DNA from: Ophelia neglecta
Lineage: Eukaryota
NCBI GenBank assembly: GCA_965285935.1
Contig: OZ260664.1
Location: forward strand, 41,850,001 to 41,914,000
DNA length: 64,000 nucleotides
Direction: 5' to 3'
The notes under the pieces were generated by a model. It was not told the origin of the DNA, ran no database searches, and saw nothing but the letters and a program-made list of their open reading frames with translations. Numbering within the stretch: the stretch's first letter is position 1; each line of letters opens with the position of its first letter. Below are positions 10,876 to 64,000 of the stretch, in pieces. Made by a program: the position numbers and the translations under genes.

Positions 10876-13800
10876 GTAAGTATTTCTTACAATATTATTT
10901 TGACAATCTTATAATATTATGCACTAGTCCTCTATCGAATAAGTTTAGTAACACTACTGCGTGATCCGAACAAAATGATTTCTCCTATATAAATATCATT
11001 CAACAGTTAGTGAAGCAACATTTTTCTGCACTTTCCAATTATCATATTTGTCAGGCCCTGCATATTACTTTGACATTGTGCTCAAACCTACTTGTGCTTT
11101 TCCAATGGGACTTGACTAGTGGTAAAGATGCCAAAATAAGAAATTATTCATACTTTAATGTAAAAGTGTCACACTAACCTCAACTTCGGAGGTATTTCTA
11201 GTTATCTTTCCTCTAGAAAAGGACCTCGTATTTATTTGCTGACCCATGAGATACATTATATTAAAATATATAAATACTTGATGAATATGACGCCTGATAT
11301 ACTTGGCATTCGATCTGTGGACGTGGATGTATAGATATTTATCACCAACCGGTGTTCAAAGCGCTTACCTATCTCTTGACTAAAATTAGTTCCTATCCTG
11401 GTCCGGGTATGCTACTGACATGGTAACCTCCTAGCTGTCGTTGGACCAGGCCTCTACACGCTAGGCATATACATGTATCGACAAATCTCACACAGAACAT
11501 CTTGTATATTTTAAAATTCTGATCAACTTTTGTCAATTGTGCTTTTAAATTTCGTTTTCCACAAAGATATTAATGGCGGTTCTCCCACGCCACCACCACC
11601 TCAACACCCCCCCCCCCCACCCACCCACACCCCGCCCGCCACTGTATGCAACGTATAGCAGCATAATCACCTGTTTCAGTTTAGGGGTCTCATACCCTAT
11701 ACCATGGCAGGGTCAGAACTTTCTCAACCAAATGAATGTACCGTTAACTACTAAATTTTGTATTTAGTAGTTGCGAAAAGGCACATGGCAATGTGAGTCC
11801 TTCTAGGGCAGTGCGAACAACCTTTGTGTTCTGTGTTAGACTTGTAAGTGAATCATTTGCTGGCCTATACCAAGGTTAGCATGTGATATATAGGCCTACC
11901 CTCAATGTGGTAGTATGACTGGATCACTTCTCAGTTCCGGTGCATGCTGCTAGTTATTGACAATTGTTGTTGTTTGTGAATTAATGATATGTTCTACCCG
12001 AAAATCATAAATTCGATATGATATGGCCATTTCAGCCAACCGGGACTGCCCGGCTGTCGACATGAGCCGCGGCAACTCCTTTGCTTTCGCGGTACCCCAG
12101 GGTAAGATCGGAGAGACCATGCCTGATGTCGAGATCATGGTTATCAATGCTGCAAATAATGAAATGCAGGCGTCTATCCGAGGGCCCGGCGCCCCTGGCT
12201 CCAACTCTGTGGTCACTGTATCTACAAAAACACTGTAAGTAGTAATAGATTTCCCCCTACTAAAGTTATTGTCGTTTAAGTATGTTGCCGGTGTCCCTTT
12301 GATCAGAGCCTTCTGGGGCAGATGTTGCCTCTGTGCTCCTTCCTCTCTTTGATCAGTGCCTTCTGAGGCTTCTTGACATGTTAACCCAACAATCCTCCAT
12401 TAACCTTCCATTATCCAGATTATTCAGTCATGGATGAATGTAACTTGAAGTACGGTTAAAAAAACACATCGCGTGATATCAGTCTTAAAGTGGAAAATAT
12501 TTGTCGCGGGCTTAAAAAATACGCTCAGAACTGTTTGATTTATTGGCATTTTTTGCCAACTGAGAATAACCTGAAAGTTTAGTAAAATTTATCAAAATGA
12601 TTTGCATGTAATTCTTTCATTGTTCTTTTACACTAATGATACCGACCATACGCATGACATTTTTAATTTGCGATACCCCAAAATGTGAACTATCAAGTCA
12701 TGATCATCACTACGGTCAGCGATAACACCATAGTTCTAGTGCAGTTTGTTAATCCCAGGGTTAGTGTAAGGCTAGACGGTATGTCCTATTCACAAACTCG
12801 GCCTCTCTCTGTTATACTCAATGCCGGTGACGTGCTGCAGCTCGCTGACCTGAAGGGGGCCGACATGTCCGGCTCACGAATCACGGCTACCAACCCCATA
12901 GCCGTCTTCGGCGGGGTTACAAGCGGTGTCTTCGGACAGCAGCGCCCCAATCTAATGCCAGATTACGTATTGGAACAAATGCCGAGGCCACATAGAACTG
13001 TTGACGATGCTGTAGTAATGTTAACCCACAAGCCAACAAAATTTAGTGGAGATATAACTTACAAGATCGTGGCTATGGATGAGCAAATAGGAGTAAGAGT
13101 AACGGACCTTGAGGGAGTGCCGACAGCAGAAGCCTACACCATGAGGACCGTGGGTGAAACGGTGGTCGAATTGAGGGCGGTGGGAGTAATAAATGTGGCG
13201 TTAGCACTCTACTACAATAAGCCTTCGTTAGTGGCTCATATCCTCCACAGCACTCCAAATCTTCCTATTCATGTATCGTTTGATCTCCAAGCTCCGGCTG
13301 TTGTATTCCCGCCAGCAGCCTCGCAATACAGACGGCAGTACTTTTTCGCCCAACCTAGAAGCTATGGTGGCATCTCCCGTTCAGAGTGGAACGTGCTGGC
13401 GTTTGTCTCTTGGATGACGGTTAATGCCGCTGCCAACCCGATTACGGCCAGAACCGGCGGTGGCGGCACTCTGTTAGCATCGGACTTTGGAGCCGGAACC
13501 AACAACAAAGCCGGAGAATTCTCCGTTGCGGCTTACGTGGTTGACGCAGACTGGGCAGACTTTACAAGTGGGTCGAGTTTCGGGCTCTATGTTGTAGGTT
13601 TTGTCAAAGATAAGCATCAATGCTCATTTGCTTTTACCCCAGACCGATGTACTTCTACGGGTGCCCCTCCAATACTAAAGGTAAGATTAGTTCCAAGTAT
13701 TTTATTGTTTATTTGTTCATTTATACACCTACCAACAGGATAACGCTGGAATATAGCACCTTATCCCTATAGTACGTAAGTACCTTAGCAGGGACGAAAA

Positions 13801-16800
13801 CTTGTAAACCTTTAAAAACGCATTATATATAAGGCGCAAAATGTACGAATTTTTCATTGTGTATATTTTACAAAATAACCGTTAACCACATATCTGTTAA
13901 TCAGATGGCTGCCAGGGCAATCATTTCCCAAAGTTGAACAAATGTCACATTCTGAAGGTTTTATGCCAAACCTATAGACCACTAATAGGAAAACATATAC
14001 AGGGAATGTATTTATGGCTATAAACTTGATTTTAACCACTTCTTGAAGGTCAAATCAGGACAAATCAGGTCAAATCAGGTCAAATCCGAATTTTCATGGC
14101 CTCTGTAATGGTCCAAGATATACTTATCATTCAATGTGTTATACATCAGAAAGTCATATAGAGTAAAATATTTTGTTGGCTATAAACTTGACCTTGACCT
14201 CTTTATTGGTGCTTATATCTAATTCCTTGCCGTGGTGACATACGGTTTTATTTTCGCATTGGGCGCTGTCTGACCTGCCCAGTCACTTTTATAGGACAGT
14301 GGTTTTGATATTTTCCACTATTAATCCCTTTAGATGCCAGGTTTCACCACTTATCAAACGTCTAGTTCCATAATGACATGTTTATTATAACACACGTATA
14401 TTATAACCCTTTAAGAAAGGAAAATACATAAATTGAGATGTTATGCAAACAAGCAAGGGGTTGTTTAACAGGGTGTAAAACAATGTGCCAAATACAATTT
14501 CCTTTTATCCGTTATATCATTATAGTAACTTTTTAGTAATACACACTATCATATACAAATACTGTGTTTTCAATTACAGCCGAATGCCCAGATGAATGAG
14601 CCTTTTCGTGAGTGATGTACTTGCTTATATCCATATTACACCATCTAATAAAAAACAAATGCTTCGGTTATTAGTGCACATGGTACGTTTAACGTCATTG
14701 CCAGGATTACTAGCCACGGATATTTGCCGAAGTTACCGCCAAGAGCTAACTAAATTTATTTGTCATGCACTAATCAGGTTAACGATCTTGGTGCTGCTAG
14801 GCTGAATTAACTTTGTCACTCTTACTATATAGTGGCTTGCTTTCTGTTTATCTTAAATTTACAAACTGCTCTTTAAAGTATTTACCTGATATTATTGATT
14901 TCGTTCCACAGACCTCTCAATCAGTAAATGTTGGCTGATCTCGATTTACTTTTGAAAACTACGGCAATTAAGGGAATGTTTCCTCTCAACTTTCATTGTG
15001 TGAAATGATTACGTGCCAAATGTGGTAGGTGGTAGTCCTGCAAGGGTTGTGGGTTCGAAAATCCACCGTAACAAACGCTTTTAAACATTAGCTTACGATA
15101 TAATTTGATATAATATGTATGATTCGACCAATTTAGTCTATGACTGGTTTCGTTGGATATAATACCTTGGAATGGATTCGCCTTGTCACCATGTTGCATA
15201 TAGAAAGCTCTTCAAATAATACTTTTTATCATATTATAAACATTAAAGAGATAATATACCTTTTTCTTCATTTGATAATAGTAAAATTGGTTCTTAACCC
15301 AGCCTTTTACAATCGATCAGGTCATGGTAGGCCTACGTTGATTGGGCTACATCGATTTTTCGAGCTTTAAATATTTATAAAATTATATAGGTTTGCATAA
15401 AAGTTTTTCTTTTCAAAAATCTATTTTCTAAATTGAATTTGTGTACGTTTAATTTTCGATTTAGATCGATTTTAATATTCTTATGGTAGCAATAGCTCAG
15501 CAGTATATCAATGTATCAGTTGGATTTAAGCTACATGTGCTCCCATATAAGTAACTTCAAATCTGATTGGCTGGACTAAAACTTGACGTCAGACTGCAAT
15601 TCTGAACAAGTGCACTTCATGTAAATCATGTTGACACTGCTGTCAAACATAATGCTATTCCCTATACGCTTGGAAAAAAAAGGATGAACATTAATAAATC
15701 GTTCCTTGTTTAATTCAATATCAGTTATAGTTTCGTAGTATCAAAAATAAGTAGCTATTGGGCGGACTTAGTTTTACCCTTGATGCTTAATAAACTAACC
15801 CGCATCGGTACAGGGCAGCTCAGGTTTCAGTTGTTTTGTCTGGCATTGAGTGGTTTTGCAAGTCTCAATCAATTATTCATGCTGTATGTTTGATTATTTC
15901 TGTAGAAACATGTCCTATCGGAAGCCTTGAGGGAGGAAAGTATAGTACCTTTATGCCATGGACGGCGCCAATAACAGGTAAGGTATAATAGACATTTTTC
16001 ATTCACAAAATGGTGCTTTCTCATGCATAAATGTTTCTGATATACCGGTACTCAATTGTATTTGAAATGTTGTCCTACAACTTGGCTTAATTTTTTCAGG
16101 GCCAAACACATCCACGGTATGGCCTATTGGGCTTCACACGGGTTATGACCTTTATGAAGTTACTACTGTTACAACAAAGACAGAAAAACTGCCAAAATAT
16201 AGCAGAGGGTATGGCTTAAAAACTTACACTTTATCATCGGCTGATATCACAAAGCCACAGCCTGAGTCCGGCAAAGCCAACTTCCTCACTTGTATGACAG
16301 TAGAAGAAGAGATAATACCTACAGGTAAGCCTATTGTTTAAACCTTAATACCTTTTGATAAAAGAGAACATTAACTTACAAGACCGCTTGTGGAATATGT
16401 GCCCTATTAAAATTCGACTTTTGCAGAAGAACATGATTATGCATCAGTGACCATGCAAGGTGACCTCAAATTGATTTGTAATTAACCAATGTTATTAGTA
16501 TTGATTCTCAAACATCTAGCGCATGACTTAGTGTGAAACCTGTGTTTTTTTGGTTATGAAGCTACAACATACCTTATGTAAATACTTATTGTCTCTTCTG
16601 TTCATATAACGTGAAACGTTCTGATCCTGATTCTGATTACTTGTTTACCCTATATATATGCCTGAGCACTTTGTTTGACCAGCTGGGAAATAATGGCCGC
16701 CTAAGCACTAATGGGTAATTAAGGTTTTCCATTTAAAACCGAAAAAAAATATTGAAGAAAACCACTGTAATTATGCCTTCTCTTTGTTTGCTTCCGACAC

Positions 16801-19800
16801 ACGGACAACAGTTACTACTATTATTGCATTCGAACCTTCTTGCTCGGGGAGCAAACATGGCCAGCGTAGTTTCCGGAAATGATGTCCTGATAATAACTAA
16901 ATACATAATGGAAATATCATTATAAACGAAAAGTCATGTCCGGTACTACTATAGGTCACTAGGTTAAATAGTGTTCGTTTTGTTGGCAAATGGACACTGC
17001 CGCCCTAAATCCAGACCTAACCCACCACCTTGAATGGAATCATTGCTATCTACTACAGCTTGGTCCCAGATAGTCACCTCAAGTCGTGAATATTCATGCC
17101 ATTTATCATTTTTCTCAAAATGCAGAGGCCGTGTTTTCTTATACACCAAGTACTTCCGGGCCATCCGTTAAATCGCCTTCACCCTATTGTGACTTCCCCG
17201 TACCAGTACCGTATGTATAGTCCTACATTATATTTGTGTTTTAAGTTTTAATGAAAGTCCTTATATTTTGTATGATCGTTTCAGGCACTTTAAAGGTTCC
17301 TGTCCAGTGTCCACGGATGCAGTTTTACTTACGCACTGGCCTGTCCGCACTCAACGCACCCGCCCCAAATAATTACAAATGTGGTATGATCCGTGCTCTA
17401 CCAGACACGGCCCTTGGTTACGATTATTATATCATGTCTGCCAGTGGAAACACGGCCACAGCTGGCTCCAACGGCATCATAGGCATCATGTCCCTGGTCG
17501 CCGGGGCTCGAGTTACAGTCTCTCTGCCGTCGGCCGCTTCGGGAAGATGCAGCCGCCTTTCAGGGGGGTCCGGCACGGGCGTGCTGACCGCTACCCCTGG
17601 CGTCCCACTCACAATTACTTTTACGAACAAGGGCGATACAGTTACTTTACAGTGCACGAAGCCGGACGAGGATATCTCTGGAATACATATCAGGGGAGAG
17701 TATAATAAACCTCTAGTGGTTTATTCCGGGGCAAGAGACACAAATCTTGGTGCTGGAGCGGGGAACGGCGACGCGATATGGGGACAAATGATTCCAACGT
17801 CTTACTACGCCAAAACCTTCAGTGTCGTCGCCGTCCAGTATACCGCAGCCTTGAGGAGAGCAGCATACAAGGTGTTAGCTCGAGATGACAGCACTAGAGT
17901 GACCATCACAGGGGTAACGGCACCCATTATTCTAAACGCAGGACAAGTGTACCCTAGCCATGGGCTGCCTGCTCAGCACTCCGATCACGTGTTTATCTCA
18001 GCCGACAAGCCTATCACGGTCGGTACATTTCTCCTCTCTCTACCAACCGTCGGCGAGGGTCAGTCTGGTTATACCTTTTTACCGTCTGTCACCCAGTGGC
18101 AAAGCGCCAATACATTTTTCCTGCCTGCCCTCACCACTCCACTGGGATCCAAAGCACTGTTGACATTGTCAATCGAGAAGGGCTATGAGTCGAACTTAAG
18201 GCTATGGACATCCACATGGGACCTGACTCCAGTTGGACCCAACGATTTTCTCCCCGTCCCAGCCTCGGCCGTTTTTACGCCAGTGCCCGGCTCTAACCCA
18301 GCGCTTGTTTCCACCACGGTCCAGATCACGGCAGCCAACTTTCCTGGGTACAGAAATACCGCAGATGGCCAGCTGGTGGTCAAGCATCTGAAGGGAATTA
18401 AGTTTGGTGCCGTCATGCATGTCATCTCAACCCAGCCATCAACTTGTACCATGAGTTTCGTTGGCGGAGCCTGCCTCAAAGTACGCATTCAGAGTTTTAA
18501 AATAATTAAACTTTATAATGTCCCTTTCGTTGGGAATAATTCCATCTTATAGTGTATTGCAGTGGGTTATATTAAGTGTCATCAATCTTTTCAATCGAGC
18601 GATTAACCTGTGCCGGTATTTTAGTAGTCATTCATCAATGATAACCAATCGGCCTTTTCTTCACTATTCATACATTAATAATCTGTTGTATATTATTTTC
18701 AGCCCAAGACTGATCCTGAAGGTTAGTTTATATTTATATAATATGGTAAAGCCTTTTAACTGAGTCACTTACACTGACCACAGTTTCGACACGTCTTCCT
18801 TAGGCCCGGCAACTACTCCCCGTTCAAATTGGTAACAGCGATCAAATGTTTTCTGATTGGCAAAGCCTCGATTATGTATACGTCTTGTCATCTTTATGGT
18901 AAGGACGAGAGGAAAGTTCCAATGTCATCTTCGTGGACTTTGACTAGGCTTAAGTGACTTGTGGGTTCATTTGTCTAGGAAATAGGAAGACATGTCAGCT
19001 ATCATCAACAGTTTAGTTATCGATGAGCAACAAGAAACATAATTTAAAGAAATAATTATGTATTTTAATAATTGTATGCCCAACTTGACTCATGTTGTAG
19101 ACGTGTGTGTGAGTGGCTCTCACACGGGAACCAAGTTCTATCTCATGGCGATGCCCGGAGCGGAAAACGTCGAAAACCTGGAATTGTATGTGAACAACCC
19201 TTCAGACACCGCGGACGTCACCTACTCTCTCCAGGTCAGTATACTGGCTTATTGAATTGAACGGCAGGCAGTATGGAGGATGAGTTACGTCATGTCAAAC
19301 ACGGTTAGGGCTCTTTATCATGATCAAGTCAATGCATTCTCTCTCTACACAGAGTCTAACTGGCAATGTCTACCTGACGAACCAGGTGGTCCCTAAAGGC
19401 GGATCAGTAAAACAGGCTGCTCTGCAATTGAACACTTTTGAACCCAATCCTTTTCAAATTGAAAATAAAGGTAAGATGGTGTGTGTTGGCACTCAATACC
19501 TAATATCACTACATCATGCAGTTCATACATTTAATATTTGGAGACAGTATGAGATAAGCTTTTTTGTGAATTAAACTACCATATCCAACCTAGGTAAGGG
19601 ACAGTAATTCAACTGGAGTTACCACGTTTCCAGTTATCATGAAGGATATTATTAAATTGTGCCTTACGAATGATAATTCATACACTTCTGTCATACAGTC
19701 ACCAGTTCTAAACCTGTCCACTTTGACAGGAATCTTCATCGTGTCGTCTGGTCCTATCAACGTGCAAGTTGTCAACCGGCAGCTAGGCGGGTGTGGCGGG

Positions 19801-52800: not shown

Positions 52801-55800
52801 TTTAAATACGTGAACTAACATGTAAATGTCGATATTTGTCTTTTAAGAGAAATATACATGTATCGAATACAGTAACGAAGACGATCTTGCGGATTCCTTC
52901 TGCACATTGAGCAGGACCTTAGGTGAAACTATATGATGTATATGTTTACGTCCCACAGGTGGTGCATCATTTACCGGAATAGCCGGAACTACAACACCCA
53001 CTACGATTTCCACAAGCGCCGCAGCAATTATCCCGCCAGTCGGTACGTCATTATTATGTCATTAGAATTAGAACACATATTCTTTGAATAACCTGTGCTA
53101 TTTGGTCTTTCACCTTATGCTTTATAAAGATTACGTCAATTATTAAAACGAATTGTCTTGTTAAGTTTTATATGTTACTTTTTAATGAGAAAAGAGGAAA
53201 GAACATTTCCACCGTGTTTTCCAATTTTATTATATGATATTTGGCAACGTTGCTTCGATCATTGTGGTGTGTCCAGCCGAGTATTGCGTACTTAAAATGA
53301 TTTTCCTTTCATGTTCAACTTGTACATTTTGTAACTATTTCAATACCTAGATCCAAACGATAGATCGACATACGGCACGCGTTTCGTTCTGCCAGTTTCG
53401 GACACTACCAGCACAAGTCCATTGGTGGTATACGTAACAAATCCTGGAAATCAAAACTACATTGTTAAACTTTCACCAGCAAATACTGAAACCAACTTCC
53501 AATGGACCCCTTTCACTACCACCGTAAGTTTCGTTTGGCATTTATGCTCAAATGTCCCTAAAAGTAGGTTTCCCCTTTAGAAAATATGAGTCTACTCACA
53601 AAAAAAAGGTAAAACCTTTAGAATACAAGGGTTGTATTGTTTCGTTTAGTTGCATTACGTTGTTCTTTATTTTTAATCAAAACAGATTCCAGCAGGAACG
53701 TCTATGGCAGTAACCTTACCCCCAAACGCGCGGCGAACTGACATTTTGGTAAACAATCCATTCCTTGTTTAGTTTTGAAACAAATACATAGGGCATGAGC
53801 TTCACGTTTACATATGTGTTATATTTAATTTTCAGTGATAGTTTGAGAAATTAGTCACTATCGATCGTCGTTTTGTGCACTTTTTCCACATGAATAACAT
53901 TCTTTTTATTAAAAGAATGTAACACTTTGTAGGTTGAGTCTGGGTTTCCTATGCTAGCTCAGTTGTATGATCCAGGTTCGTGTGCCATATACACCGCCCT
54001 GCCAGTATCCGCCGTCAATCCTGGCATGGGACAAACACAGGTAAAAACGTCGCAAATATGTAAACACTTCGGTGTCCTGTTTACTCGAAAACTTCACAAT
54101 TTAATATCGGACTTCGAACAGAAGTAGCAATCTTACAAGAACATATATAACATATCACGCGCATTGAAATAAATCATTTCGTCGGTTCATCTTCTAATAA
54201 AGCGTAGTTTGCTTTTAATGCCTTTTTTTCTATACTGACATTACCTTTTTTGATTTATCAGGAGTACCTAGTTACCGGTTACAAACCAGCATTAGGGTCC
54301 AAATCAGTAATAATAGTATCAGCGACAAGTCCTACTGGCAGAACCTATTTTTCGATTTTATTTAAAACTCCAAATGCGAATGACGTAATCACAGTTGTTA
54401 GCACTTCCCTGGATCTAAGCCCAGATATGTGAGTACCCCATTAGTTCTAAAACGACCGTTTTACTACAAGGCATGAGTTAGTGTGCCTTAATTATCATAT
54501 ATACACCACGATAATATCCTTGCATTCATCATGTTAAACATTGGTTATTTTGTTATGTTATGAACCAACTAATATAAACATTCTAGAGAATATGCAGTGG
54601 ATGTAACCGTCACAGAGCCACTTCAAAGATTTGAGTCAACCGCTGATTTGACCGGCACACTGATTACGAACACCATACAACCCGGCGGAGTTCCCATCGT
54701 AGTAACCGTGGCCAACACAGGGCGCACCGCGGTGAGATAATTATTAAACAAACATTACTACGTGTATGGTGTAAGATTCTAGAAAAGTATTTGGTGTTGA
54801 CAGGAAGAACAGTGCACAATCAGCTAAAATGGCATACCAAAAACATGATATTTTTATGATATTTATGCTTTTTTCTGTGAACTTCTTAAGTTTGATTAAT
54901 TCAAAATTTAATAAAATATTATATTATATAATAAATATTTACAATTTCGTTATAACTATGATTAAAGTAATGGTGCATTGTTAAAATTAAGCTACATTTA
55001 TTCTTCTCGTGTTCAACTTTGTATATCATTGCTGGTATTTAAAATTAATGACCAAAATTTCCTGGTATAGATACGAAAAACATATAAGGTAGTTTGCGCC
55101 GGGGCGTTTGACTCATTTCAAATTATTACTTAGGGTTCCCTAGAGCAAAATTATAAGTAGACCAACAATATGTGTATGGAACAAAGCATCCCAACCATTA
55201 CATCTTTGTTATTTGTGATCAGACGTTAGGTTCAACATCGACAGATACAATGACCATTCAGCTGATGCCAGTAATTAATCTTGGCTCTAATTATGTGATA
55301 GCACCAATACCTGAAGTTCCAAACTATGAGGTAAATTTATTTGTATTGATTTATTGTACCTGCTTACGCGCGGTTTCATGGTGTAAATGATCAACTTAAC
55401 CGAAAAGGAAGTTCGTTACTGAGCCAGTAAAAAGGATATAATTTATATCCAATAGTTCAACTTATTAGAGTCATAGATATCTGCAACATTTTAGCCTCGT
55501 TGGTATTTCTTTCTTAAATAATGTTGTTCATTATTGATACATATTTGTTGCTTTGTTTTCTCATACAGAGTTGTTTGTAACGAAAAACATTTGCCTTCTA
55601 GGTCAAAGTATTAAACAGCCAAAGTGACACTGAGGTTATTTACACTACGAGGGCAGACGGCACATCAGAAACTGTGTCTACAACAATTGTTTTAAGTAAC
55701 CAATATACTTATGATATAAGGACCTTTACCGGACCTGTACGGATTTACTCATCTAAACCCATTCAGGTAATAACACGCCGTTGCAAACTATTCGCCTATT

Positions 55801-58800
55801 ATATTATTCACGGCTGTGATTTTATTCGATCAAACTTGCAGGTATTCCCACCCATTTCCTTATTGTTTTCGATTCTAGGTTGTTCAGTATTCTGTCAGTC
55901 AAATTCAATCACGGGCCACTGCCATTTTGATTCCTGCAGTTGAGCAATGGCTTGACGCTTACACAGTCCCTGTACCAGGAGATTCCTTGTTCAGCAGGTA
56001 TATTAACAGAATGTTCTGCTTCACTACGTACTGATACATGTGAAGTCTTCACGCAATCAATAAATTAGTCAAGATTATCTCTCCGCTTGTTGTTGCCATC
56101 GATGAAATTACTGGTATATCATAACACTACACTTTTTGTTAATGTCCCGTTTTACCATTAAGTGATATATTAATTTTATTGCTCGTATTTGGTATCGCAT
56201 TCTTGAATGATATGTGTTCAGAGATATCTTACTGATTCTTTCAATCGCAACAAGCGAGCCATAATGACTTAATGGCGGTTAAGATAATGACAGGTTAAAG
56301 TCTCAATAAATGTTCCAAAATAGTTTTTCTCTTATTCTACATAGATTCGTCCACATATTTGCCCCTGTTGGAAAAGAGAGGACCGTTCTTGTTAATGGTA
56401 GACCCGTTGACCTGTTCCAGACCACAAATAACAAATGGGAGATCATACCGGGATCAAACCCAGCAATCTCCTATATTAGCCTGCGATATGTCACGGTTAG
56501 AACTTATTTGTTATTACCTTTATTTTCCTTTTGTGGAAGTAATTGGTATTTATTGCACTTCTTTTATATATCAACTGTATTTTTAAGGATACCATACATG
56601 TTAACACCACGGTTGGAAACCTGGCCATTGGAGTAATTATAAATGGCCATAAACCTGCTGATTGCTCATATGGATTTCCAGCAGGGTACTCGGCTAAAGG
56701 GGTAAGTAGTAACTGTAAGATCATGGCGTGTCATTTCTATCCCTATCTTAAGCTTATATCTATAGTAAAATGTCCCTGTCTGACTAAGCATATTCAGTTA
56801 GTTTATGTGTTGGGATTTTAACCATAATTATCTAAATTCTTGCAACATCCGAGTTCAATCTTTACATTCTGGGTGTGTGTTTTTTAGGAGATATTCGATG
56901 TTGCCCTTCCGCCATCTACATCAACCACCTCTGGTCCAATCATTGACCCATTTCCTTCAGGTAATACTGCTGTCTCTTTGATAAACAAACTTCAACCAAT
57001 TTTTGTTCAACCCAGCAATGCTTAAAATGATTTTTTGGGTATTTTGTCTTCGTTTAAGTGCAACTGCTTTAATATTCTGTATGCAGTATAAATAACAACG
57101 TTGTTTTGTAAATACCTTTGGAAAAAAGGTGAATTGATTAAGTACGCCGTCTTAGGGGAAAAGCACTTTGTCTTTATATTATTTCTCTAATCGTAAACGC
57201 TCAAGTTGTCATCTCATAACTCCACAATCGCGAGGGGCAATCAAGGTCCCTTAATAAAATCTGCCAGTGAGCATGTGCTTTCAGCTAAAACCTGATTTTT
57301 ATAAGTTTTACTAAAAGGACATGTTCTTTGTCAGGTGTATAGAGCATCAATGAAGTGGCTTTGGAACTATGATCATGTGTGGAAAAATGTTATTAGGAAA
57401 TTGCACAGACCTTTAGTATGTGATAATGTTAAAATTAACTACCTGAAAAAACCGGTTTTTATTTATTCTTATGTATCATCAATTCTATTTTCCTTGTTAG
57501 CCTCTTGTGAGCAGTCAAACATGGGCAAGGAGTTTATAATTGGATTTGCGCAGAATCCAGTGCAAAACATCAAACTACAAGTATATCCTGCATCCGTAGA
57601 AGCTAAGTTCATAACTGTTAACGTTGAAATACCCAACTCATATCCTAAGGTCGAAGAAACCGTCCAAATTACAGGTGGTCAGGTAAATAAAGTGTTATGA
57701 TTATTTCACATTTAGATACTATTCCTAGTATGCCATATATCAGCCAAAGTATATTTTAACCAAGTAATAAAATATATTTTCACATACCTTTTGATAGGTA
57801 GCCAAGTTTGAATTCCCAGCTGATCTTACCGTCAATGGCATCGGCAGAAGTTCCAATGTGGCTGTTAAGATTCACGCATCTGCAAACATTGGGCTTTTTG
57901 CAGTCAGTCAAGTAAGAATAGCCAGCCGAGCTTGAATCCTTACTTCGACCATGTTTATTCACTGCCCTATGCTATCTTGATATAAAAATTAAAAGAAATG
58001 TATGCAACATGGCAACAAAACGGGTTCTTTTCACTAAACACTACCGAAAGACCATCTCTTTCAACAAAAGTAGAGATTTTCTTCATGATCATTTATGAAC
58101 ACGAAATATACATGGGGTGGGTGCGGGCGTGCTTGTATAGATATTGATATTAAAAAGTATATCAACATTTTCTACCGCCTATGTAGCAAACGATGTTTGC
58201 TTTTTAAGTACCTACCACAGTCCATTATCAATAAATCTTCATTGTATACAGGGAATGGGATCATGCGATGGGTATATGGCATATCCAGTTTTCACCTTGG
58301 GGCAGGCAGCAGCAGGATACACTTACTATACCCTCAGTCATTTCTCCATCAACTCCGGACTAAGTCAGGTGACATTTGTCTCTCCGTACAGCGGCACCAA
58401 TGTTGACATCACTCTCTCCCGTACCGCCGCCGCTATGAATTTCCCAGGGGATGTGGTCAGTATCTTCGTAATATATGTTTCATGTTGGATAAACCCTTCT
58501 GTTCAAGATTTTTATCATATTAACACCAGTCATTTAACTTACAAATGTATTTTTCATTAATTAAAACAGTCAATCTACAGTGGAGGAAGCGTCAAGAAAT
58601 ATATCAATTTGCCCGCTTATGAAGTGGTACAGCTACAGAATCGAGGCGACCTCTCCGGCACCCGTCTGCTGTCAAACTACCCCATTGCAGTTGTGGTCGG
58701 TAACACAAATACTCGGTTGCCTGGAAGCCCGTCTACCTCAGACTCCAGTCACCTCGCTGGTATGGTCCCTCCCCTTCAACTGCTAGGGCGCAACCATTTC

Positions 58801-61800
58801 TTTATACCTATGCCTGGCCGTACTAATGGCTACAATATCAAGGTGAGCTGGTCGCATAGTATAATCAATTTTTTTATTTGTGTTTCATACTATATACAGT
58901 GATCAATGGATAACATCATAAGCGTAGAATATAAAACGACAAAAAGAGTACAAATAAAGACATAAAGCAAAAGGACTGTCTACTTTACTAAATCATGTTG
59001 TGTTGAATCATCAATGGCATCATGGCAGAGAGAATTCATACGGGCAGAGTGGTTATTGTATAAGTTGTGTACCGTCATATACACGCATACACGCTCATAT
59101 AAACATAAAGACCCCTTCATAATTACATATCCAAGGGGTCAGGGGTAAGACAGAAATGGGGCAGGTGTGACTAATGACTCAATCGGCGACATTTTCCCCC
59201 TTCAGTTCGAAGTAAAATCTGTGCTTAAACGGCTTCAGAAAGTGCAAAACTTCGCTGCTAGATTGGTTACTAAAATACGTGACCGCATTACACCGGGCTT
59301 GTATGATTTGCACTGGGTTCACGTGAAACACGGAATTGATTTCAAGCCTTCGTTGATGGCGTACAAGGTTCAGAATGGAGACGTCGCTGTGTGCATCTTC
59401 GAGCTGCTGCAGAGATACGAACCTACTCGTGCTCTGCAGTCAAAGAAACTATTACTTGTTAGACCAAAAATATGTGATGATCATAATCCACTTGCTAAGG
59501 ATTTTAAATTGAGTAATGCATATTTTTCAAATCTGACTGCTGTTGTAATAAGCAATGTTTTTTTGCATCCATATCTATTTGTTCACATATATTGTGAAGC
59601 TCCTTTGAACTTGACGTACTTAGGATGCTTAGCGCTATGTTAATGCTGCTATTATTATTATAAAATGTAAGTTCCATTCATTACTTTAATGCAGTTTACA
59701 ATCGATGTTTCGTTTAGATTGTGTCGACTACAGGTAACACTGCGGTTACAATCGGAGGAACCGTCGTTAAAACCATGCCATCGGCCGGGGAGACGTTTGT
59801 TTACGAGCCTCAATCAGCAACCGAAAGTGTCTTGGTGTCGACCAACAATCCTGTGTTGGCAGCGCAAATGATGAAAGGTATGTTCACCCGAGCTAGATGG
59901 GCGTTAAATATATTTTTTTTACAATTAGCGAGAGAATTAGCCCCTGAGCTCAACTTCATACAAACGTTGGCAGGTTAAAAAGAGCGCACGTGCTTCCAGT
60001 ATCATGCTTTTTAAGCTGTCATGCAAAAGCAAAAGCAGTTACTGTTGATTTTTGGATTACTTGAACCTATTTTTGGATTACTTGACCCTATTTTTGGATT
60101 TCTTGACCCTATTTTCCAACAAAACCATTTTCATAGTTACAAAAACACGTCTACCTTCACTAATGGTTCAACCTCCGACTTGTTACCTCTATTTTGATAA
60201 GTACTATCAATTTGTCTCTTTGATGTTACAAAGGTTCCAACACAGGCTCGACCAGCAGTGATCCCAGTATGTTAATCATACCTGCCCAGGAGACATGGAG
60301 ATCACAGTACACCTTCTCCACAATGCGAACAAGTGATTCAAATTTCACAAACCATGTTATTGTTGTAATACAAACATCAAAGGTACTCAAATATACCTTG
60401 TTTATTAAAATGTCGTTATTCACATTACCTAAAAGATATATAATTGGTCCTTCATAGGTGAGCATGTACTGGCTATTCTTTCCAGATACAATTCCTAAGG
60501 CTGGATAACCAGCTAGTGGACCCAAACGGTTGGGTGTCTATTCCAAGCAGTAGTCCTCTTATGTCTGGAAAAGCGCTTAGTATCAATGTAGGCATTCATT
60601 TCCTGACGACATCTAGTGGTGGCAAATTTGGTGCATACGTCTACGGTAATTCAGACAGTACATGTTCGTACTCCTACCCTGCCGGACAATGCGCATCTAA
60701 CTTGGTAAATACTCTTATCAATCAACAATATAAATCATCGTAAAATAATGAGAAATATACCCAAATAGGGAACCTTTCAATCGTTTCGAAAATCAATAGC
60801 AAATAAAGCCATCGTATAGGTTTTTTGCATTTCATCTCTTTCTGTTTTGTAGATTTCTAAAATGAATACAGGCGGTAAGTATGGGTTTTAGCTTTACCTT
60901 ATCAATTTTACGATTTTTGTTTTGCACAAGTCATTCAACATTCACATTTAATTAGTTTAACCTGATTATTGATTCAAATTTTGCTTGTGGCTCTGGTTTG
61001 ATTACATATTCTATTCGGCGACACTCAATTTCAATGTGTTTGTGTTGTATTTTTCCGACTTGAAGCCACTGGTGATAATACTGGATATACATTTGTGGCA
61101 CCTTATCCTGCCAACTGGGTGGGTACGGTTAAGATGTCATCGGAATCTGCGAGCGATGTGGCGGCTACAATCTCCTATCCGGGAATCACTGCAGCATGTA
61201 AGCAAAAATCACATATATATTCGCCGTAACACACAACTTATTTTACAAGCATGCTATTCAAGATTTACATTGTTTCTGTTGTAGGGCCAACAACTGTCAG
61301 ACGCGGCTCCCCTCAGGCATTCGATCTGACTGCCACTCCGACACCAGGACTGATAACTGTATTGGCCACAGGCATAATTTCCGTGCAAATTCAGGTAAAA
61401 TATATATTCCAGGTTTAATATTCCAACTGGTAGTTAGATAATAATCTTTACTTTTCGCAATGAAATAGTTTATCAAATGTATTTTATCCTTTAGTTGCAT
61501 TTTTTTGGAATTTCGTATTATTTTTTCTTTTTCTTATCAGCAAAGAGGACAAGGCTGCGCCGGGTACTTAGCAGTTGCATTTGAGAACTACGACAAGAAC
61601 TATGTGGTGACAACATGGAATAAGGATTCGGTTGTGTATATAGTATCGAACACAACCGAAAACGTAATAACTGGTACGTTTGGTGGGTCCGCTGCCACCC
61701 CGATAACATGGAGCGGCTCAACCTCTGGTGGAAACAGCAACGGTGGCAGCACCTTCTCAATAGATATGCGCCTGCATGGAAACTTCATAACTTTCACCAG

Positions 61801-64000
61801 CCCTGGTGACCTTAGCCTGACCAGTATCAACGCTCTTTCTCCCGTTGGTGTCTTTGCTGGCAACAAGAAAATTGCAATCGGCGAAACCACATCAAGCTTC
61901 ATGGATATAAACATGGAACAAATCCTGCCCACGTCGACATGGGGAAAGACGTTTTATATCCCCAACGTCCCAGGTATGCCTGAAATGTTTATTTGATATT
62001 TGACTGTGATATTTAACAGTGGTGACTGTTGGGGTGGGGACAGGAGGTTAAGCCCCTCCCCCCCCCCCCAATACCCACCTCCTCCTCCCTAATTTGTGTT
62101 TACAGATTGATCCCACGAGGGTCAGCTAAAAAAACTAAAAAATCAGTTGTCGAAAGGAATATTTAAACAAAATGACATTCAAAAGACTCATTTTTCAAAG
62201 CATGTCCTTGTTTATTTTGCCTTCCTACTAGGTTCTTCCAATGGGTATTATATCAAGGTAATAAGTTTAAAAACTGATACTACTATCACGGTGATTCCTT
62301 CTACCCCAATCACCAGAGCGGTGGGTTCCAACAAGATGGAGGAAGTGGAAATCAGTGACAATAGCGCTGCAATGCTGACCTCTAACCATCATATACAGGT
62401 ATGTGAACATGGATTAGATATGTTGTTAAAAATAAACATTGCCTTCACATGGATATATTACATTCACATATCTAAAAAAAACATGTTTGCACCAGTAATT
62501 GTAAAAAAAAACTCAATTTAATAGAAATTATCCATCATTAAAGGTGATTCAGTATGTGAAGAGCAAGACAACGTCTTCAGGGTCTGGTTTTCCAACCTCC
62601 TTTAACATAGTACCTGTGGAACAATACAATACCCATTACATCATCCGTCCAGTAGCTCCAAGTGACGTCACAACTGGTGTCAGTTATTTTATTACCATCA
62701 TCTGTAGGTCGGCTGATCTACCAGGACTTATTGTCAATGGTAATGCTCTTAACAAGTTACCAAAATACTTCGCAAAAAGCATATACGTAGTCTAGAACCA
62801 ACTTGAATCATCGATAGCCCATAAGGTTTTAGTTGATAAGTTACACCTGGCATCCATTTTGTTTGATATCAAAGAATACATGTGCGTTCCGTTGCAGGTG
62901 TGCCAGCCATCAACACTGTCGGATGGCGAATCCTTCAGGGTTCAAACCCGGAAACCCAAGCAACTACTTTTCTTGTACAACCTATTGAACAATATCTCAC
63001 ACACAACAACAAAAAGACGTTTGGCGTGTTTATGTACGTTGTTGACGATAACCCTAGTGGGTGTGCTTACGGACATCCAGCGGGTACCAGACTAAGCAAG
63101 ATAAATGTAAGTCCATATAACCGCGCAACGCTTAAACTTTTCTTTTGTTATATCGCTGCGTTGATTTTTGCGATGTTTGTGGTTAAATGGTAACTTTGGT
63201 AGCTTTGCGATCAAACCTTTTAGATAAATAATGATTATAAAACGAATGACTGTATAAATCAAAAATCTTTATATCGTTTTAAGTCGCAATCTTGTCTTTG
63301 CAGACCGGTGTTTTACCTGCACCAGAAACTGACGGAAATTCCTTTGCTGTTGTAGTAAACGATAATGACAGTAAGCTTTTCTATCAATCAAAGTACCACT
63401 GGAATTATATAGTTTCATGAGAATTATTAAATTTTAAATAACATTGTTATCTAATGGGTTTGCACCTTCAACACTGGTCAGTGTTGGATACATTAATGGC
63501 CTCTGTCTTTCGTTCTACATCAAACAGAAGAACGCTATTTCTCTTCTCAGTTGGGTGTACAAACAACAACCGTGGAACGGACTTTGTTCTGGTTTATATG
63601 CAAAATGGTGTCACCCAAAGTGATTTAGAACTACAGCTTTACCCAGCCTATACACGCTCTAATCAGATAACAGCTACCATCACCACACCCAAATATCTCG
63701 TCGGCGGGAATATGGCCATTAACCAACAGGTAGAAAATAAATAAAAGATTTTGATATAAAATCACCCTCAACCGTTTATGCAATCAACGCTGTTCACGAT
63801 AACACATTTAGGAACTAAAGGAAAGTAGTAAATACGTGTGTTTTTTATCGCTCGGATTCTTTGTTGGTGTTCGTTGACTGTGTGCTTAAATCAGTCTCAT
63901 GTTCTCATTATAAGGTGACACTTGTTGGAGGTAATGCTTCCCTAGTAACTATAAACAAAAACCTAATGGTAACGGGAACAAGAAAACAGCCCTATGGAAT
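6759..64000 (+). CDS. Giant secreted protein with at least 14 tandem IgGFc-binding-protein N-terminal-like domains, one CBM14 chitin-binding domain and a Gly-rich linker; about 103 coding exons, about 6,090 aa in window, 3' incomplete
   Basis: Manual exon chaining with GT-AG boundaries keeps one open frame, with matching phases at all junctions (one doubtful acceptor in repeat 1). Recurring FCGBP-N-type motifs such as DHIVEQMPPINTYGKEY, DLSGTKITATGRIAVWTG and FGAYxY..C appear once per repeat. No in-frame stop was found before the window end. Confidence 0.88.
9190..9520. repeat. Probable interspersed-repeat fragment (ggcggccatcttgga / caaggtca motifs)
   Basis: Motif combination typical of invertebrate non-autonomous repeats. 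Related motifs occur at about 13900-14200 (atggctgcc, tgaccttgacct) and about 23790 (aaaatggccggcg). Confidence 0.4.
12036..13680 (+). CDS. IgGFc-binding-like repeat 1 (exons 12036-12234 and ~12720-13680; second acceptor uncertain)
   Basis: DCPAVDMSRGNSFAF...; ADMSGSRITATNPIAVFGG; DYVLEQMP; FGLYVVG...CSFAFTPDRC; donor AAG|gtaaga at 13681. Confidence 0.75.
14047..14086. repeat. 10-bp tandem repeat (aggtcaaatc) x4
   Basis: aggtcaaatc aggacaaatc aggtcaaatc aggtcaaatc. Confidence 0.9.
14580..14607 (+). CDS. Linker microexon 1 (28 nt, PNAQMNEPF)
   Basis: ttacag|...|gtgagt; supplies the phase 0 to 1 bridge required between repeats. Confidence 0.75.
15906..18480 (+). CDS. IgGFc-binding-like repeat 2 (exons 15906-15977, 16100-16324, 17285-18480)
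   Basis: TCPIGSLEGGKY...; YKCGMIRALPDTALGYDYY; DISGIHI; FGAVMH...CTMSFVGGACLK; all phases match. Confidence 0.85.
18703..18721 (+). CDS. Linker microexon 2 (19 nt, PKTDPE)
   Basis: ttttcag|...G|gttagt; phase 0 to 1. Confidence 0.75.
19101..22062 (+). CDS. IgGFc-binding-like repeat 3 (exons 19101-19234, 19353-19470, 19730-20043, 20192-20561, 20763-20979, 21918-22062)
   Basis: VCVSGSHTGTKFYL; GGCGGFHLLPERSLGQFY; GHMVEQAIP; FGAYLYE...CSVGHALDFC. Confidence 0.88.
21100..21730. repeat. Degenerate inverted repeat / foldback element in an intron
   Basis: agagacagaagta (21331-21343) pairs with tacttctgtctct (21574-21586), with weaker similarity extending both ways. The left arm is purine-rich with a G run and the right arm is pyrimidine-rich with a C run. 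Confidence 0.55.
22176..22206 (+). CDS. Linker microexon 3 (31 nt, IPATGVIPAN)
   Basis: tttcag|...G|gtaagt; phase 0 to 1. Confidence 0.8.
22317..25768 (+). CDS. IgGFc-binding-like repeat 4 (exons 22317-22431, 22538-22664, 22877-23040, 24169-24273, 24469-24623, 24771-24974, 25281-25768)
   Basis: DYLGKQFYFTF; GGCGATMVIPRDALGSDYY; DFTGTRVQ; DHIVEQMPPINTYGKEY; FGLTVYG...FCAIS. Confidence 0.88.
23113..23162 (+). repeat. Dispersed ~50-bp repeat, with a second copy at 34155-34205 and a partial copy near 44884
   Basis: tattcttgaataatgatttgcctttgtctgccgggtatccatccccgttt aligns with tattcttgactgatgatttggcgtaagtctgccgggtatctacgcccgttt; probably a decayed SINE-like fragment. Confidence 0.55.
26239..26257 (+). 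CDS. Linker microexon 4 (19 nt, KADTAE)
   Basis: Long T tract, ccag|...G|gtagga; phase 0 to 1. Confidence 0.7.
26398..29764 (+). CDS. IgGFc-binding-like repeat 5 (exons 26398-26499, 26615-26733, 27026-27233, 27848-28000, 28121-28314, 28599-28763, 29071-29231, 29389-29467, 29600-29764)
   Basis: VCHSSFAGVEFY; SGCGATQLLP; DLSGTYIHSDTRIAVFSG; MEQLPPTHTFGRQY; FGAWIF...CTVAYNAGSCI. Confidence 0.88.
29834..30176. mobile_element. MITE / non-autonomous DNA transposon (343 bp) with perfect 24-bp terminal inverted repeats
   Basis: ccagcggcataaagtctggagact (29834-29857) is the exact reverse complement of agtctccagactttatgccgctgg (30153-30176). Flanks are tatt / tata, an imperfect TSD. No coding capacity. 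Confidence 0.8.
30533..30572 (+). CDS. Linker microexon 5 (40 nt, PDPIPPISAVPAT)
   Basis: cattcatag|...G|gtaagc; phase 0 to 1. Confidence 0.8.
30779..32872 (+). CDS. IgGFc-binding-like repeat 6 (exons 30779-30969, 31080-31331, 31507-31801, 32043-32186, 32487-32872)
   Basis: VCNADYSGKRFVVMF; ACGSYQVIPTDAIGWNYY; DYMVEQLTP; FGAYMY...CSALQTIGFCL. Confidence 0.88.
31810..31899. repeat. Compound microsatellite (TGAT)n followed by (TTTAC)n
   Basis: Directly visible just after the donor at 31802. Confidence 0.95.
32991..33027 (+). CDS. Linker microexon 6 (37 nt, PVIPDPAVHQAA)
   Basis: tttctag|...T|gtaagt; phase 0 to 1. Confidence 0.78.
33201..36003 (+). CDS. IgGFc-binding-like repeat 7 (exons 33201-33325, 33569-33667, 33751-33855, 33987-34053, 34303-34466, 34674-34923, 35089-35320, 35504-35616, 35846-36003)
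   Basis: RCNTDYFGRFFVL; EGCGAFQVIPFDGLGYTY; DFVVEQMLP; FGAYIF...CSIAYQAGGCL. Confidence 0.88.
36541..36583 (+). CDS. Linker microexon 7 (43 nt, PQPRLTTTTIAPIN)
   Basis: ttgcag|...G|gtaagg; phase 0 to 1; Pro/Thr-rich. Confidence 0.8.
36960..41081 (+). CDS. IgGFc-binding-like repeat 8 (exons 36960-37165, 37423-37530, 38442-38735, 38962-39111, 39462-39688, 40407-40524, 40899-41081)
   Basis: QCTLDYEGDEFIFTF; GGCGGFQVLPKESLGYSYY; DHIVEQMMP; FGAYLYG...CSILTQIGMCL. Confidence 0.88.
41575..41626 (+). CDS. Linker exon 8 (52 nt, TTIPPEPPTTRSPEPMP)
   Basis: ttacag|...G|gtaaac; phase 0 to 1; mucin-like P/T content. Confidence 0.8.
41947..46494 (+). CDS. IgGFc-binding-like repeat 9 (exons 41947-42071, 42743-42939, 43570-43749, 44454-44742, 45345-45601, 45890-46049, 46384-46494)
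   Basis: RCRKDYIGREFALVF; GNCGGYMAIPTDAL; DHTVEQLPPVTTFGREF; FGATVYG...CAYGYPAGMCL. Confidence 0.9.
46802..46991 (+). CDS. Chitin-binding type-2 (peritrophin-A / CBM14) domain exon
   Basis: CPNPSITEKIIDPTTCSSYYVCAFGRLLKQDCPSTYEFSPVVRTCVPAQQAFC has spacing C-x14-C-x5-C-x9-C-x12-C-x7-C, with the typical DPxxCxxYYxC and CPxxxxF motifs. The exon is phase 0 to 1. Confidence 0.9.
47869..50662 (+). CDS. IgGFc-binding-like repeat 10, divergent (exons 47869-48099, 48331-48593, 48761-49003, 49176-49387, 49797-49911, 50185-50270, 50560-50662)
   Basis: EEGRRYHIAL; GSCSDYKPLP; DMSGTYIFG; SMIPVDSWSRNF; FMAWQY...GGCNK; phases consistent. Confidence 0.85.
50845..53042 (+). CDS. Gly-rich low-complexity linker (exons 50845-51031 and 52959-53042)
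   Basis: GVAGTP-GLGVTG-GAGFTS-GVGVTA-GIGGTQ-...-GIGGAP-GIGATG, then GASFTGIAGTTTPTTISTSAAAIIPPV; phases 0 to 1 and 1 to 1. Confidence 0.8.
53351..56701 (+). CDS. IgGFc-binding-like repeat 11 (exons 53351-53523, 53686-53748, 53933-54040, 54262-54428, 54587-54731, 55223-55330, 55602-55766, 55879-55997, 56345-56495, 56588-56701)
   Basis: STYGTRFVL; GSCAIYTALP; DLTGTLI; IQLMPVINLGSNY; IPAVEQW; DCSYGFPAG. Confidence 0.85.
56888..56960 (+). CDS. Linker exon 11 (73 nt, EIFDVALPPSTSTTSGPIIDPFPS)
   Basis: tttttag|...G|gtaata; phase 0 to 1. Confidence 0.8.
57501..60704 (+). CDS. IgGFc-binding-like repeat 12 (exons 57501-57682, 57798-57911, 58252-58455, 58570-58842, 59718-59877, 60234-60382, 60486-60704)
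   Basis: SCEQSNMGKEFIIGF; GSCDGYMAYP; DLSGTRLLSNYPIAVVVG; DPSMLIIP; FGAYVYG...CSYSYPAGQC. Confidence 0.9.
59205..59662 (+). mobile_element. 5'-truncated non-LTR retrotransposon remnant (L2/CR1-group LINE ORF2 C-terminus plus 3' tail)
   Basis: LQKVQNFAARLV...ITPGLYDLHW..VK..IDFK...AYK..NG...YEPTRALQS is the characteristic post-RT C-terminal segment. It ends in gcgctatgttaatgctgctattattatta, a short tandem-repeat tail. Confidence 0.8.
60048..60115. repeat. 21-bp tandem repeat x3 (atttttggattacttgaccct)
   Basis: Three near-identical copies; these produce the spurious DYLxLFL ORF. Confidence 0.9.
60853..60874 (+). CDS. Linker microexon 12 (22 nt, ISKMNTG)
   Basis: ttttgtag|...G|gtaagt; phase 0 to 1. 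Confidence 0.78.
61066..63106 (+). CDS. IgGFc-binding-like repeat 13 (exons 61066-61197, 61285-61394, 61541-61973, 62232-62398, 62544-62739, 62898-63106)
   Basis: DNTGYTFVA; QGCAGYLAV; PVGVFAGN; MEQILPTSTWGKTF; FGVFMY...CAYGHPAG. Confidence 0.88.
63304..63370 (+). CDS. Linker exon 13 (67 nt, TGVLPAPETDGNSFAVVVNDND)
   Basis: ctttgcag|...A|gtaagc; phase 0 to 1. Confidence 0.75.
63551..64000 (+). CDS. IgGFc-binding-like repeat 14, partial (exons 63551-63729 and 63915->64000)
   Basis: GCTNNNRGTDFVLVYMQN...LELQLYP; the second exon is open to the window end. Confidence 0.85.

Follow-up and report, generated by a model that had tools for sequence, protein, structure and literature searches.

The FCGBP_N domain goes back to the definition by Lang et al. 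in 2016, who found it in bacteria as well as in invertebrates, where it is carried in varied architectures without VWD (PMC4948705). Its function is called unclear there and in a 2025 study of FCGBP (PMC4948705, PMC11796319), and the latter reports five cysteines in the human FCGBP N1 domain without mapping their bonds (PMC11796319). Besides Lang et al., full-text matches for PF17517/FCGBP_N include a study of mussel population genomics whose title and abstract deal with local adaptation, and none of the papers found here mentions two cysteine pairs bracketing the FCGBP_N unit. The closest described logic comes from von Willebrand factor (VWF), for which two accounts (PMC9084892, PMC6754583) state that a long-range N-to-C disulfide shields the core of A1 and A3 from chain pull, while A2, being devoid of this bond, unfolds. 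Here, we addressed a stretch of 64,000 nucleotides from the assembly of Ophelia neglecta (GCA_965285935.1, contig OZ260664.1, positions 41,850,001 to 41,914,000 of the forward strand; hereafter the window), in which 12036-64000 of the + strand is occupied by one multi-exon gene encoding at least 14 tandem FCGBP_N modules of 430-460 residues each. Four conserved cysteines per module, designated C1 to C4 in chain order, are probably engaged in two nested intramodule disulfides, C1-C4 and C2-C3, and this is the best reading of the pattern described below.

Paired presence and absence of four conserved cysteines

The preliminary description of this gene had pointed to the joint occurrence of the first and the last cysteine in 13 repeats and explained it by a disulfide linking the N- and C-termini of each domain. 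All motifs quoted there were found on the + strand in their places (RCRKDYIGREF at 41952, YPAGMCL at 46459, VTDGVDYLGKQF at 22316, VPDAYLQ at 25742, SPINMKH at 50633, DPNDRSTYGTRF at 53350, FPAGYSA at 56675, ATGDNTGYTF at 61065 and HPAGTRL at 63074), the N-terminus of R10 at 47869 being read as (V)PEGSEEGRRY. With C1 recognized by the pattern C-x(5-8)-G-x-x-F/Y and C4 as the terminal cysteine of the module, the concordance persisted in 13 of 13 complete modules after the splice check: R1-3, R5-9 and R12 possess both residues, and R4, R10, R11 and R13 possess neither. Borders of modules were set from splice sites, excluding apparent gain or loss of cysteines derived from introns. The first exon of each module starts two residues ahead of the C1 position, so that C1 is the third residue, and the last exon stops 2-10 residues past the C4 position at a GTAAGT-type donor. 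The 'CC' preceding R4, the cysteine preceding R13 and the 'AVC' following R10 (inside the donor gtatgt) are intronic and hence were not counted. R14 carries C1 and has its end outside the window; the terminal cysteine predicted for it was encountered in module R14 of an orthologous gene, which ends with ..PAGMCIGPL.

This orthologue became available through an exhaustive search, in which the two best matches (41% identity) and a third one fell on a single 42,140-nucleotide contig (ENA ERZ25069296 ctg21414); word-index protein searches, whether started from the R2 exon or from a 53-row profile, gave nothing useful. The contig, which was read as four overlapping loci (L001-L004), carries the orthologous gene of another animal with 19 modules in the same order, and the synteny extends to the chitin-binding CBM14 exon after module 9 and to a Gly-rich stretch after module 10. 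The orthologue is far poorer in introns, many of its modules being single open frames versus 5-8 exons per module in the window. A third copy (locus L005), originating from the same sample as the orthologue, spans modules 5-13, and additional modules were taken from loci L006, L009 and L011 and from single proteins.

Apart from C1 and C4, every window module has two further conserved cysteines, a pair overlooked in the preliminary description: C2 belongs to a G-x-C-G-G-F-like motif, and C3 lies nine residues ahead of C4 (e.g. ..GCAYGYPAGMCL..). In the reference module of 460 residues, cysteines occupy positions 4, 109, 444 and 453, with PF17517 covering residues 113-432. Thus C2 stands four residues before the PF17517 core, and C3 and C4 stand 12 and 21 residues after it, so that all four are outside the core, C2 and C3 bracketing it and C1 and C4 bracketing the whole unit. 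The structural unit consequently exceeds the Pfam model by about 105 residues on the N-terminal and about 28 on the C-terminal side, and no Pfam family matches the first ~107 residues of the module. If both bonds are formed, C2-C3 would join the two ends of the core, and C1-C4 would join the extreme N-terminus, including the N-terminal extension of ~105 residues, to the C-terminus.

The states of modules, written as presence or absence in the order C1 C2 C3 C4, were surveyed over about 55 modules from the window, the 42-kb orthologous contig, the third copy, the other loci and single proteins (L008 was excluded, its first exon having an ambiguous start). At the aligned columns, only four of the 16 possible states were seen (++++, -++-, +--+ and ----), and the 12 mixed ones are absent. 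The 13 complete modules of the window comprise nine ++++ and four -++-. The orthologue has 11 modules of the ++++ type (R1-3, R5-7, R12, R14, R15, R17 and R19), seven of the -++- type (R4, R9, R10, R11, R13, R16 and R18) and one +--+ (R8). In the third copy, R6, R7, R9 and R12 are ++++, R8 is +--+, and R10, R11 and R13 are -++-; L006 contributes two -++- modules, two ++++ come from L009, L011 adds three ++++ together with one ----, and several single proteins are either ++++ or ----. Each pair also occurs on its own: C2 and C3 are the only two cysteines in orthologue R16 (401 residues), and C1 and C4 are the only two in orthologue R8 (434 residues). Likewise, C2 and C3 are alone at the aligned positions in orthologue R4, R9 and R10 and in R10 and R13 of the third copy, and C1 and C4 are alone at these positions in R8 of the third copy. 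C2 and C3 were lost as a pair in R8 of the orthologue (L001:11764-13065) and of the third copy, whereas R8 of the window retains all four residues. Nested pairing is favored because, among the three ways to pair four cysteines, only C1-C4 with C2-C3 leaves no unpaired cysteine in every state.

The modules, their linkers and the coordinates of the codons concerned, all on the + strand of the window, are as follows (a slash marks the splice junction).

12036..13680, +: R1, ++++; C1 codon 12047-12049, C4 codon 13648-13650; PF17517 E 3.4e-20; acceptor tttcag/CC, donor aag/gtaaga; C3 and C4 in ..QCSFAFTPDRC..
15906..18480, +: R2, ++++ plus extra Cys pairs; C1 15911-15913, C4 18472-18474; PF17517 E 6e-29
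15906-15977, 16100-16324 and 17285-18480, +: exons of R2, placed by splice sites, phase-1 introns and homology to orthologue P0002
19101..22062 (3' end approximate), +: R3, ++++; C1 19106-19108, C4 22042-22044
22317..25768, +: R4, -++-; C1 and C4 absent, C2 and C3 kept; acceptor cctag/TG after the intronic 'CC'
26398..29764, +: R5, ++++; C1 26403-26405, C4 29744-29746
30779..32872, +: R6, ++++; C1 30784-30786, C4 32852-32854
33201..36003, +: R7, ++++; C1 33206-33208, C4 35983-35985; its orthologue was folded
36960..41081, +: R8, ++++; C1 36965-36967, C4 41061-41063; +--+ in the orthologue and the third copy
41947..46494, +: R9, ++++; C1 41955-41957, C4 46474-46476; orthologue R9 lacks both
46694..47029 (open frame; match ~46847-46981), +: chitin-binding exon of the CBM14 (peritrophin-A) type, six Cys; PF01607 E 4.4e-9; same exon after orthologue R9
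47869..50662, +: R10, -++-; acceptor ccag/TG, donor gcg/gtatgt; C2 in ..GSCSDY..
50845..51040 (limits approximate), +: Gly-rich linker exon with G-V/I-G-type repeats, between R10 and R11
53351..56701, +: R11, -++-; acceptor cctag/AT; C2 in ..GSCAIY..; C3 in ..DCSYGFPAGYSAKG, followed by gtaagt
56891..56962, +: linker exon, short and of the Pro/Ser/Thr type, separating R11 from R12; tblastn to the orthologue linker E 1.7e-4
57501..60704, +: R12, ++++; C1 57506-57508, C4 60690-60692
61066..63106, +: R13, -++-; acceptor ttgaag/CC; C-end ..GCAYGHPAGTRLSKIN, followed by gtaagt
63551..64000, +: R14, of which the window includes just the first exon(s); C1 63556-63558; orthologue R14 is ++++

The first exon of R2 (15906-15977) reads ..TCPIGSLEGGKY..; another candidate for it, 16712-16879 ('..HCNYAF..'), was discarded as having no credible acceptor. 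The C-end of R4 is ..FCAISTVPDAYLQVK followed by gta, and orthologue R4 is in the same state. For R9, the inner pair is represented by C2 in exon 42809-42940 and by C3 at 46447-46449. Module 2 (window 16100-16324 and 17285-18480; orthologue L002:7640-9040) has extra cysteines conserved in both species at model positions 85, 164 and others, which probably form further disulfides.

Kinship of the modules, predicted fold and rival pairings

Phylogenetic relations were assessed with a tree of 40 modules from three loci, built from exon-wise pieces aligned by hidden Markov models (HMMs) in a common frame, with the trait columns removed. Modules of the window and of the orthologue pair one to one on this tree with strong support (identity for R1-R4 is 32-50%), and the absence of C1 and C4, below called the unclamped state, is accounted for by three changes: in the R4 pair, in orthologue R9 alone and in the clade uniting R10, R11 and R13 with orthologue R16 and R18 (Shimodaira-Hasegawa-like approximate likelihood ratio test, SH-aLRT, 94). 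The share of the window is two, namely R4 and the R10/R11/R13 clade. The weight placed on the "13 of 13" count in the preliminary description was therefore too great: the naive chance of a perfect 9-versus-4 match is 1/715 (1/C(13,4)), a figure ignoring the kinship of repeats, and the pattern in the window amounts to two evolutionary events. The change in module 9, which is ++++ in the window and in the third copy and -++- in the orthologue, is a recent one, both end cysteines having changed together. On a broader tree, an animal clade of ---- modules is nested among ++++ ones, so that each pair gains one further joint absence. Judged by their position on the tree, R10, R11 and R13 are members of an old subfamily and not newly loosened modules; most unclamped modules belong to it, and its C-terminal motif resembles Cys-free animal and bacterial forms. 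Because bacterial and other animal members of the family are also devoid of C1 and C4, their absence may be the older state and the clamp may be the derived feature. Several bacterial matches have an N-terminal cysteine at the C1 column, around position 25 of the protein, which we take to be probably a lipoprotein signal cysteine.

The fold was predicted with AlphaFold2 and a 53-row alignment for orthologous modules lying in single open frames, while window exons were searched singly. For orthologue R7 (++++), an all-beta model was obtained with a predicted local distance difference test score (pLDDT) of 92.0 and a predicted template modeling score (pTM) of 0.93, the first and last ten-residue blocks scoring 83 and 82. 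Orthologue R13 (-++-) gave a similar confident all-beta model (pLDDT 87.6, pTM 0.90). Since both types fold confidently, the unclamped one does not look like a decayed module.

Several observations weigh against the nested pairing or against the setting assumed for it. The number of independent contrasts for C1/C4 is two on well-supported branches and three overall, and although all are concordant, the sign test (p = 0.5) is not significant because the contrasts are so few; C2/C3 has a single one (R8) in the three-locus tree. An R11-like -++- module of the third copy (L005 11439-11702), which has no C4, carries a cysteine (..RKSCGKTF..) displaced from the C1 column by five residues in the downstream direction; in the distant ---- lineage L007, the spacing of C1 is matched, without C4, by cysteines belonging to Cys-rich 'DEDC' linkers; and the number of cysteines in orthologue R2 is odd (9). 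No relative was recovered from PDB by sequence, whether a single exon or a profile served as the query, and comparison of the model with PDB by Foldseek returned only weak matches to multi-beta-sandwich proteins with TM not exceeding 0.18. Finally, secretion is argued from the domain content only, because no signal-peptide exon was found. The case for pairing thus is carried more by the parity of states than by counts of events.

One alternative explanation is that the match of C1 and C4 is a by-product of ancestry, two old subfamilies differing at many positions, with these cysteines being free or bonded elsewhere but not to each other. The unclamped state does reduce to three changes, one of which embraces the whole clade of R10, R11, R13 and orthologue R16 and R18, and the small number of contrasts speaks for the same. 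Nevertheless, R4 and orthologue R9 lost both cysteines apart from that clade, modules with C1 and C4 alone or with C2 and C3 alone do exist, and all four observed states are paired, with none of the 12 mixed ones among ~55 modules. It would also be unusual for extracellular modules, dozens of them, each to retain an unpaired cysteine. We therefore regard ancestry as an unlikely explanation.

Covalent interchain links made by C1 and C4, in the style of polymeric gel-forming mucins, might be expected for a protein resembling a component of matrix or mucus, with CBM14 and Pro/Ser/Thr linkers, and intermolecular disulfides are indeed used by FCGBP and mucins (PMC11796319). However, independent intermolecular sites need no joint gain or loss, the termini are modeled with fairly high confidence as expected of packed ends, and, although the human domain sits on a different branch, recombinant human FCGBP N1-N2 is monomeric under non-reducing conditions (PMC11796319). 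Altogether, such links seem improbable. Local pairing, i.e., a small C-x8-C loop closed by C3-C4 with C1-C2 in the N-terminal part (or else C1-C3 and C2-C4), is suggested by the distance of only nine residues between C3 and C4 and still appears quite improbable, as at least 13 modules have C3 without C4 and C2 without C1, R8 in the orthologue and its counterpart in the third copy have C4 without C3 and C1 without C2, and each of these alternatives leaves two free cysteines per such module. A junction disulfide from C4 of one module to C1 of the next, conceivable for residues only ~15-35 positions apart along the chain with a linker between them, fits poorly and is contradicted by the pattern to the extent of being hardly credible: in the window, concordance is 7/13 across junctions versus 13/13 within modules, and in the orthologue the respective values are 8/18 and 19/19. 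With mismatches such as R3(+) to R4(-), R4(-) to R5(+), R12(+) to R13(-) and R13(-) to R14(+), this scheme would leave many cysteines unpaired.

The terminal bond proposed in the preliminary description thus retains its place as C1-C4 within the nested pairing: it agrees with the parity over ~55 modules, with the paired change in orthologue R9 and with the R8 modules having C1 and C4 only. What it lacked was the inner pair, and both bonds are predicted from sequence.

Architecture of the gene and its linkers

The window has no runs of N. Matches to PF17517 (IgGFc_binding, FCGBP's N-terminal domain) were obtained in large reading frames with E values from 8e-10 to 6e-29; exons of the window score 38.9-101.7 bits against the gathering score of 25.6 bits, and modules of the orthologue reach 64-116 bits, covering profile positions 2-296 of 297. 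The 14 modules were resolved by iterated HMMs made from pieces of the window and then by a 460-state model derived from alignment A1. Assignment of the CBM14/peritrophin-A exon is supported by 36.8 bits for PF01607 against the gathering score of 22.1 and by the six cysteines visible in its translation. Pfam scans of the window frames yielded IgGFc_binding and CBM_14 only, that is, not the succession of FCGBP_N and VWD-C8-TIL units specific for vertebrate-type FCGBP, with the gene continuing beyond the window; genes called on the orthologous contig gave PF17517 alone. Upstream of 12036, the search for a signal-peptide exon or a conserved 5' exon was negative. From this content, we infer that the product is a large secreted-type string of FCGBP_N modules with Pro/Ser/Thr- or Gly-rich linkers and one CBM14; the CBM14, the Gly-rich exon and the Pro/Ser/Thr linkers suggest an extracellular chitin-associated protein of matrix or mucus.

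In both species, introns begin in phase 0 at the donors that follow C4, whereas the acceptors that precede C1 have phase 1. This mismatch implies that a short exon of 3n+1 bases is needed in each inter-module intron where the next first exon is without a linker. One such exon was located by homology (56891-56962, between R11 and R12), and the search for the remaining inter-module linker exons and for the 5' end of the gene in the window was negative. The Gly-rich exon at 50845-51040 consists of elastin-like G-V/I-G-x repeats with no Pfam match, and a similar stretch lies at ~26120-26270 of the orthologue (gene orientation). Low-complexity Pro-rich sequences of the PPPPPTPTPP-like type are found at 9480-9620 and 11560-11650 upstream of the gene and at ~41350-41420 in the intron between R8 and R9; they give weak tblastx matches to poly-Pro upstream of the orthologue and may be simple repeats or relics of linker exons. 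An open frame of 158 residues within an intron of R12 (59167-59643, +) has no Pfam match and may be what is left of a mobile element. Among distant relatives, a eukaryotic gene in L007 (84-5686; ENA ERZ23486764 scaffold_6910) encodes, in one open frame, three FCGBP_N modules devoid of cysteine, with Cys-rich linkers of the D-x-D-x-D-G-L-I-D-E-D-C type connecting them, and is followed by a Sushi / SUEL-lectin / F5_F8_type_C protein.

Mechanical reading and comparison with known systems

By analogy with VWF A1 and A3, a pull along the chain of a ++++ module would run through C1-C4 and spare the fold. In a -++- module, only the N-terminal extension and the tail of ~9 residues (~115 residues in total) could be pulled out, and such modules could not unfold fully, because the retained C2-C3 would hold residues 109-444 closed. 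The preliminary description viewed unclamped domains as extensible or sacrificial; a load-bearing or sacrificial role is plausible as a speculation drawn from this analogy. The order of module types (e.g. + - + + - + - + after the chitin-binding module) is conserved between the species, which could mean tuning. One may tentatively envisage, as a rather unlikely elaboration, a graded mechanical chain, in which ++++ modules would be shielded beads, -++- modules would release part of their length (an extension of ~105 residues, ~40 nm) and +--+ modules would keep the outer staple only, the whole being tuned for an elastic matrix anchored to chitin.

FCGBP_N is widespread, occurring in animals and gliding bacteria, and the PDB searches made here revealed no solved structure for it. 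Nested pairing, if true, would define the actual boundaries of the unit as larger than the Pfam model, give a simple four-type rule for animal modules and offer a clear and cheap prediction for mass spectrometry and force spectroscopy.

Relative to the FCGBP_N proteins of Lang et al., the gene described here differs by the number of repeats, from at least 14 in the window to 19 in the orthologue within one gene, and by the presence of CBM14; relative to vertebrate FCGBP, it has no VWD-C8-TIL units within what was scanned. The six-Cys CBM14 exon and the Pro/Ser/Thr-rich linkers liken it to matrix proteins and mucins of the peritrophin type, from which it differs in having just one CBM14 among many FCGBP_N modules. 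Peritrophins are best known from arthropods. FCGBP_N, according to Lang et al., is absent from that group (PMC4948705). The likeness to VWF A1 and A3 consists in the logic of a cysteine pair located near the termini and in the linkers, short and O-glycosylated around A1 and of the Pro/Ser/Thr type between the modules here. The fold is all-beta and unrelated to that of the A domains, the disulfide here is a sequence-based prediction, and the "open" modules, unlike A2, which has no long-range pair, keep the inner one, C2-C3. A force-shielding end-to-end disulfide is known from VWF; its occurrence, in graded form, in a chitin-binding repeat protein of giant size would, if true, be new.

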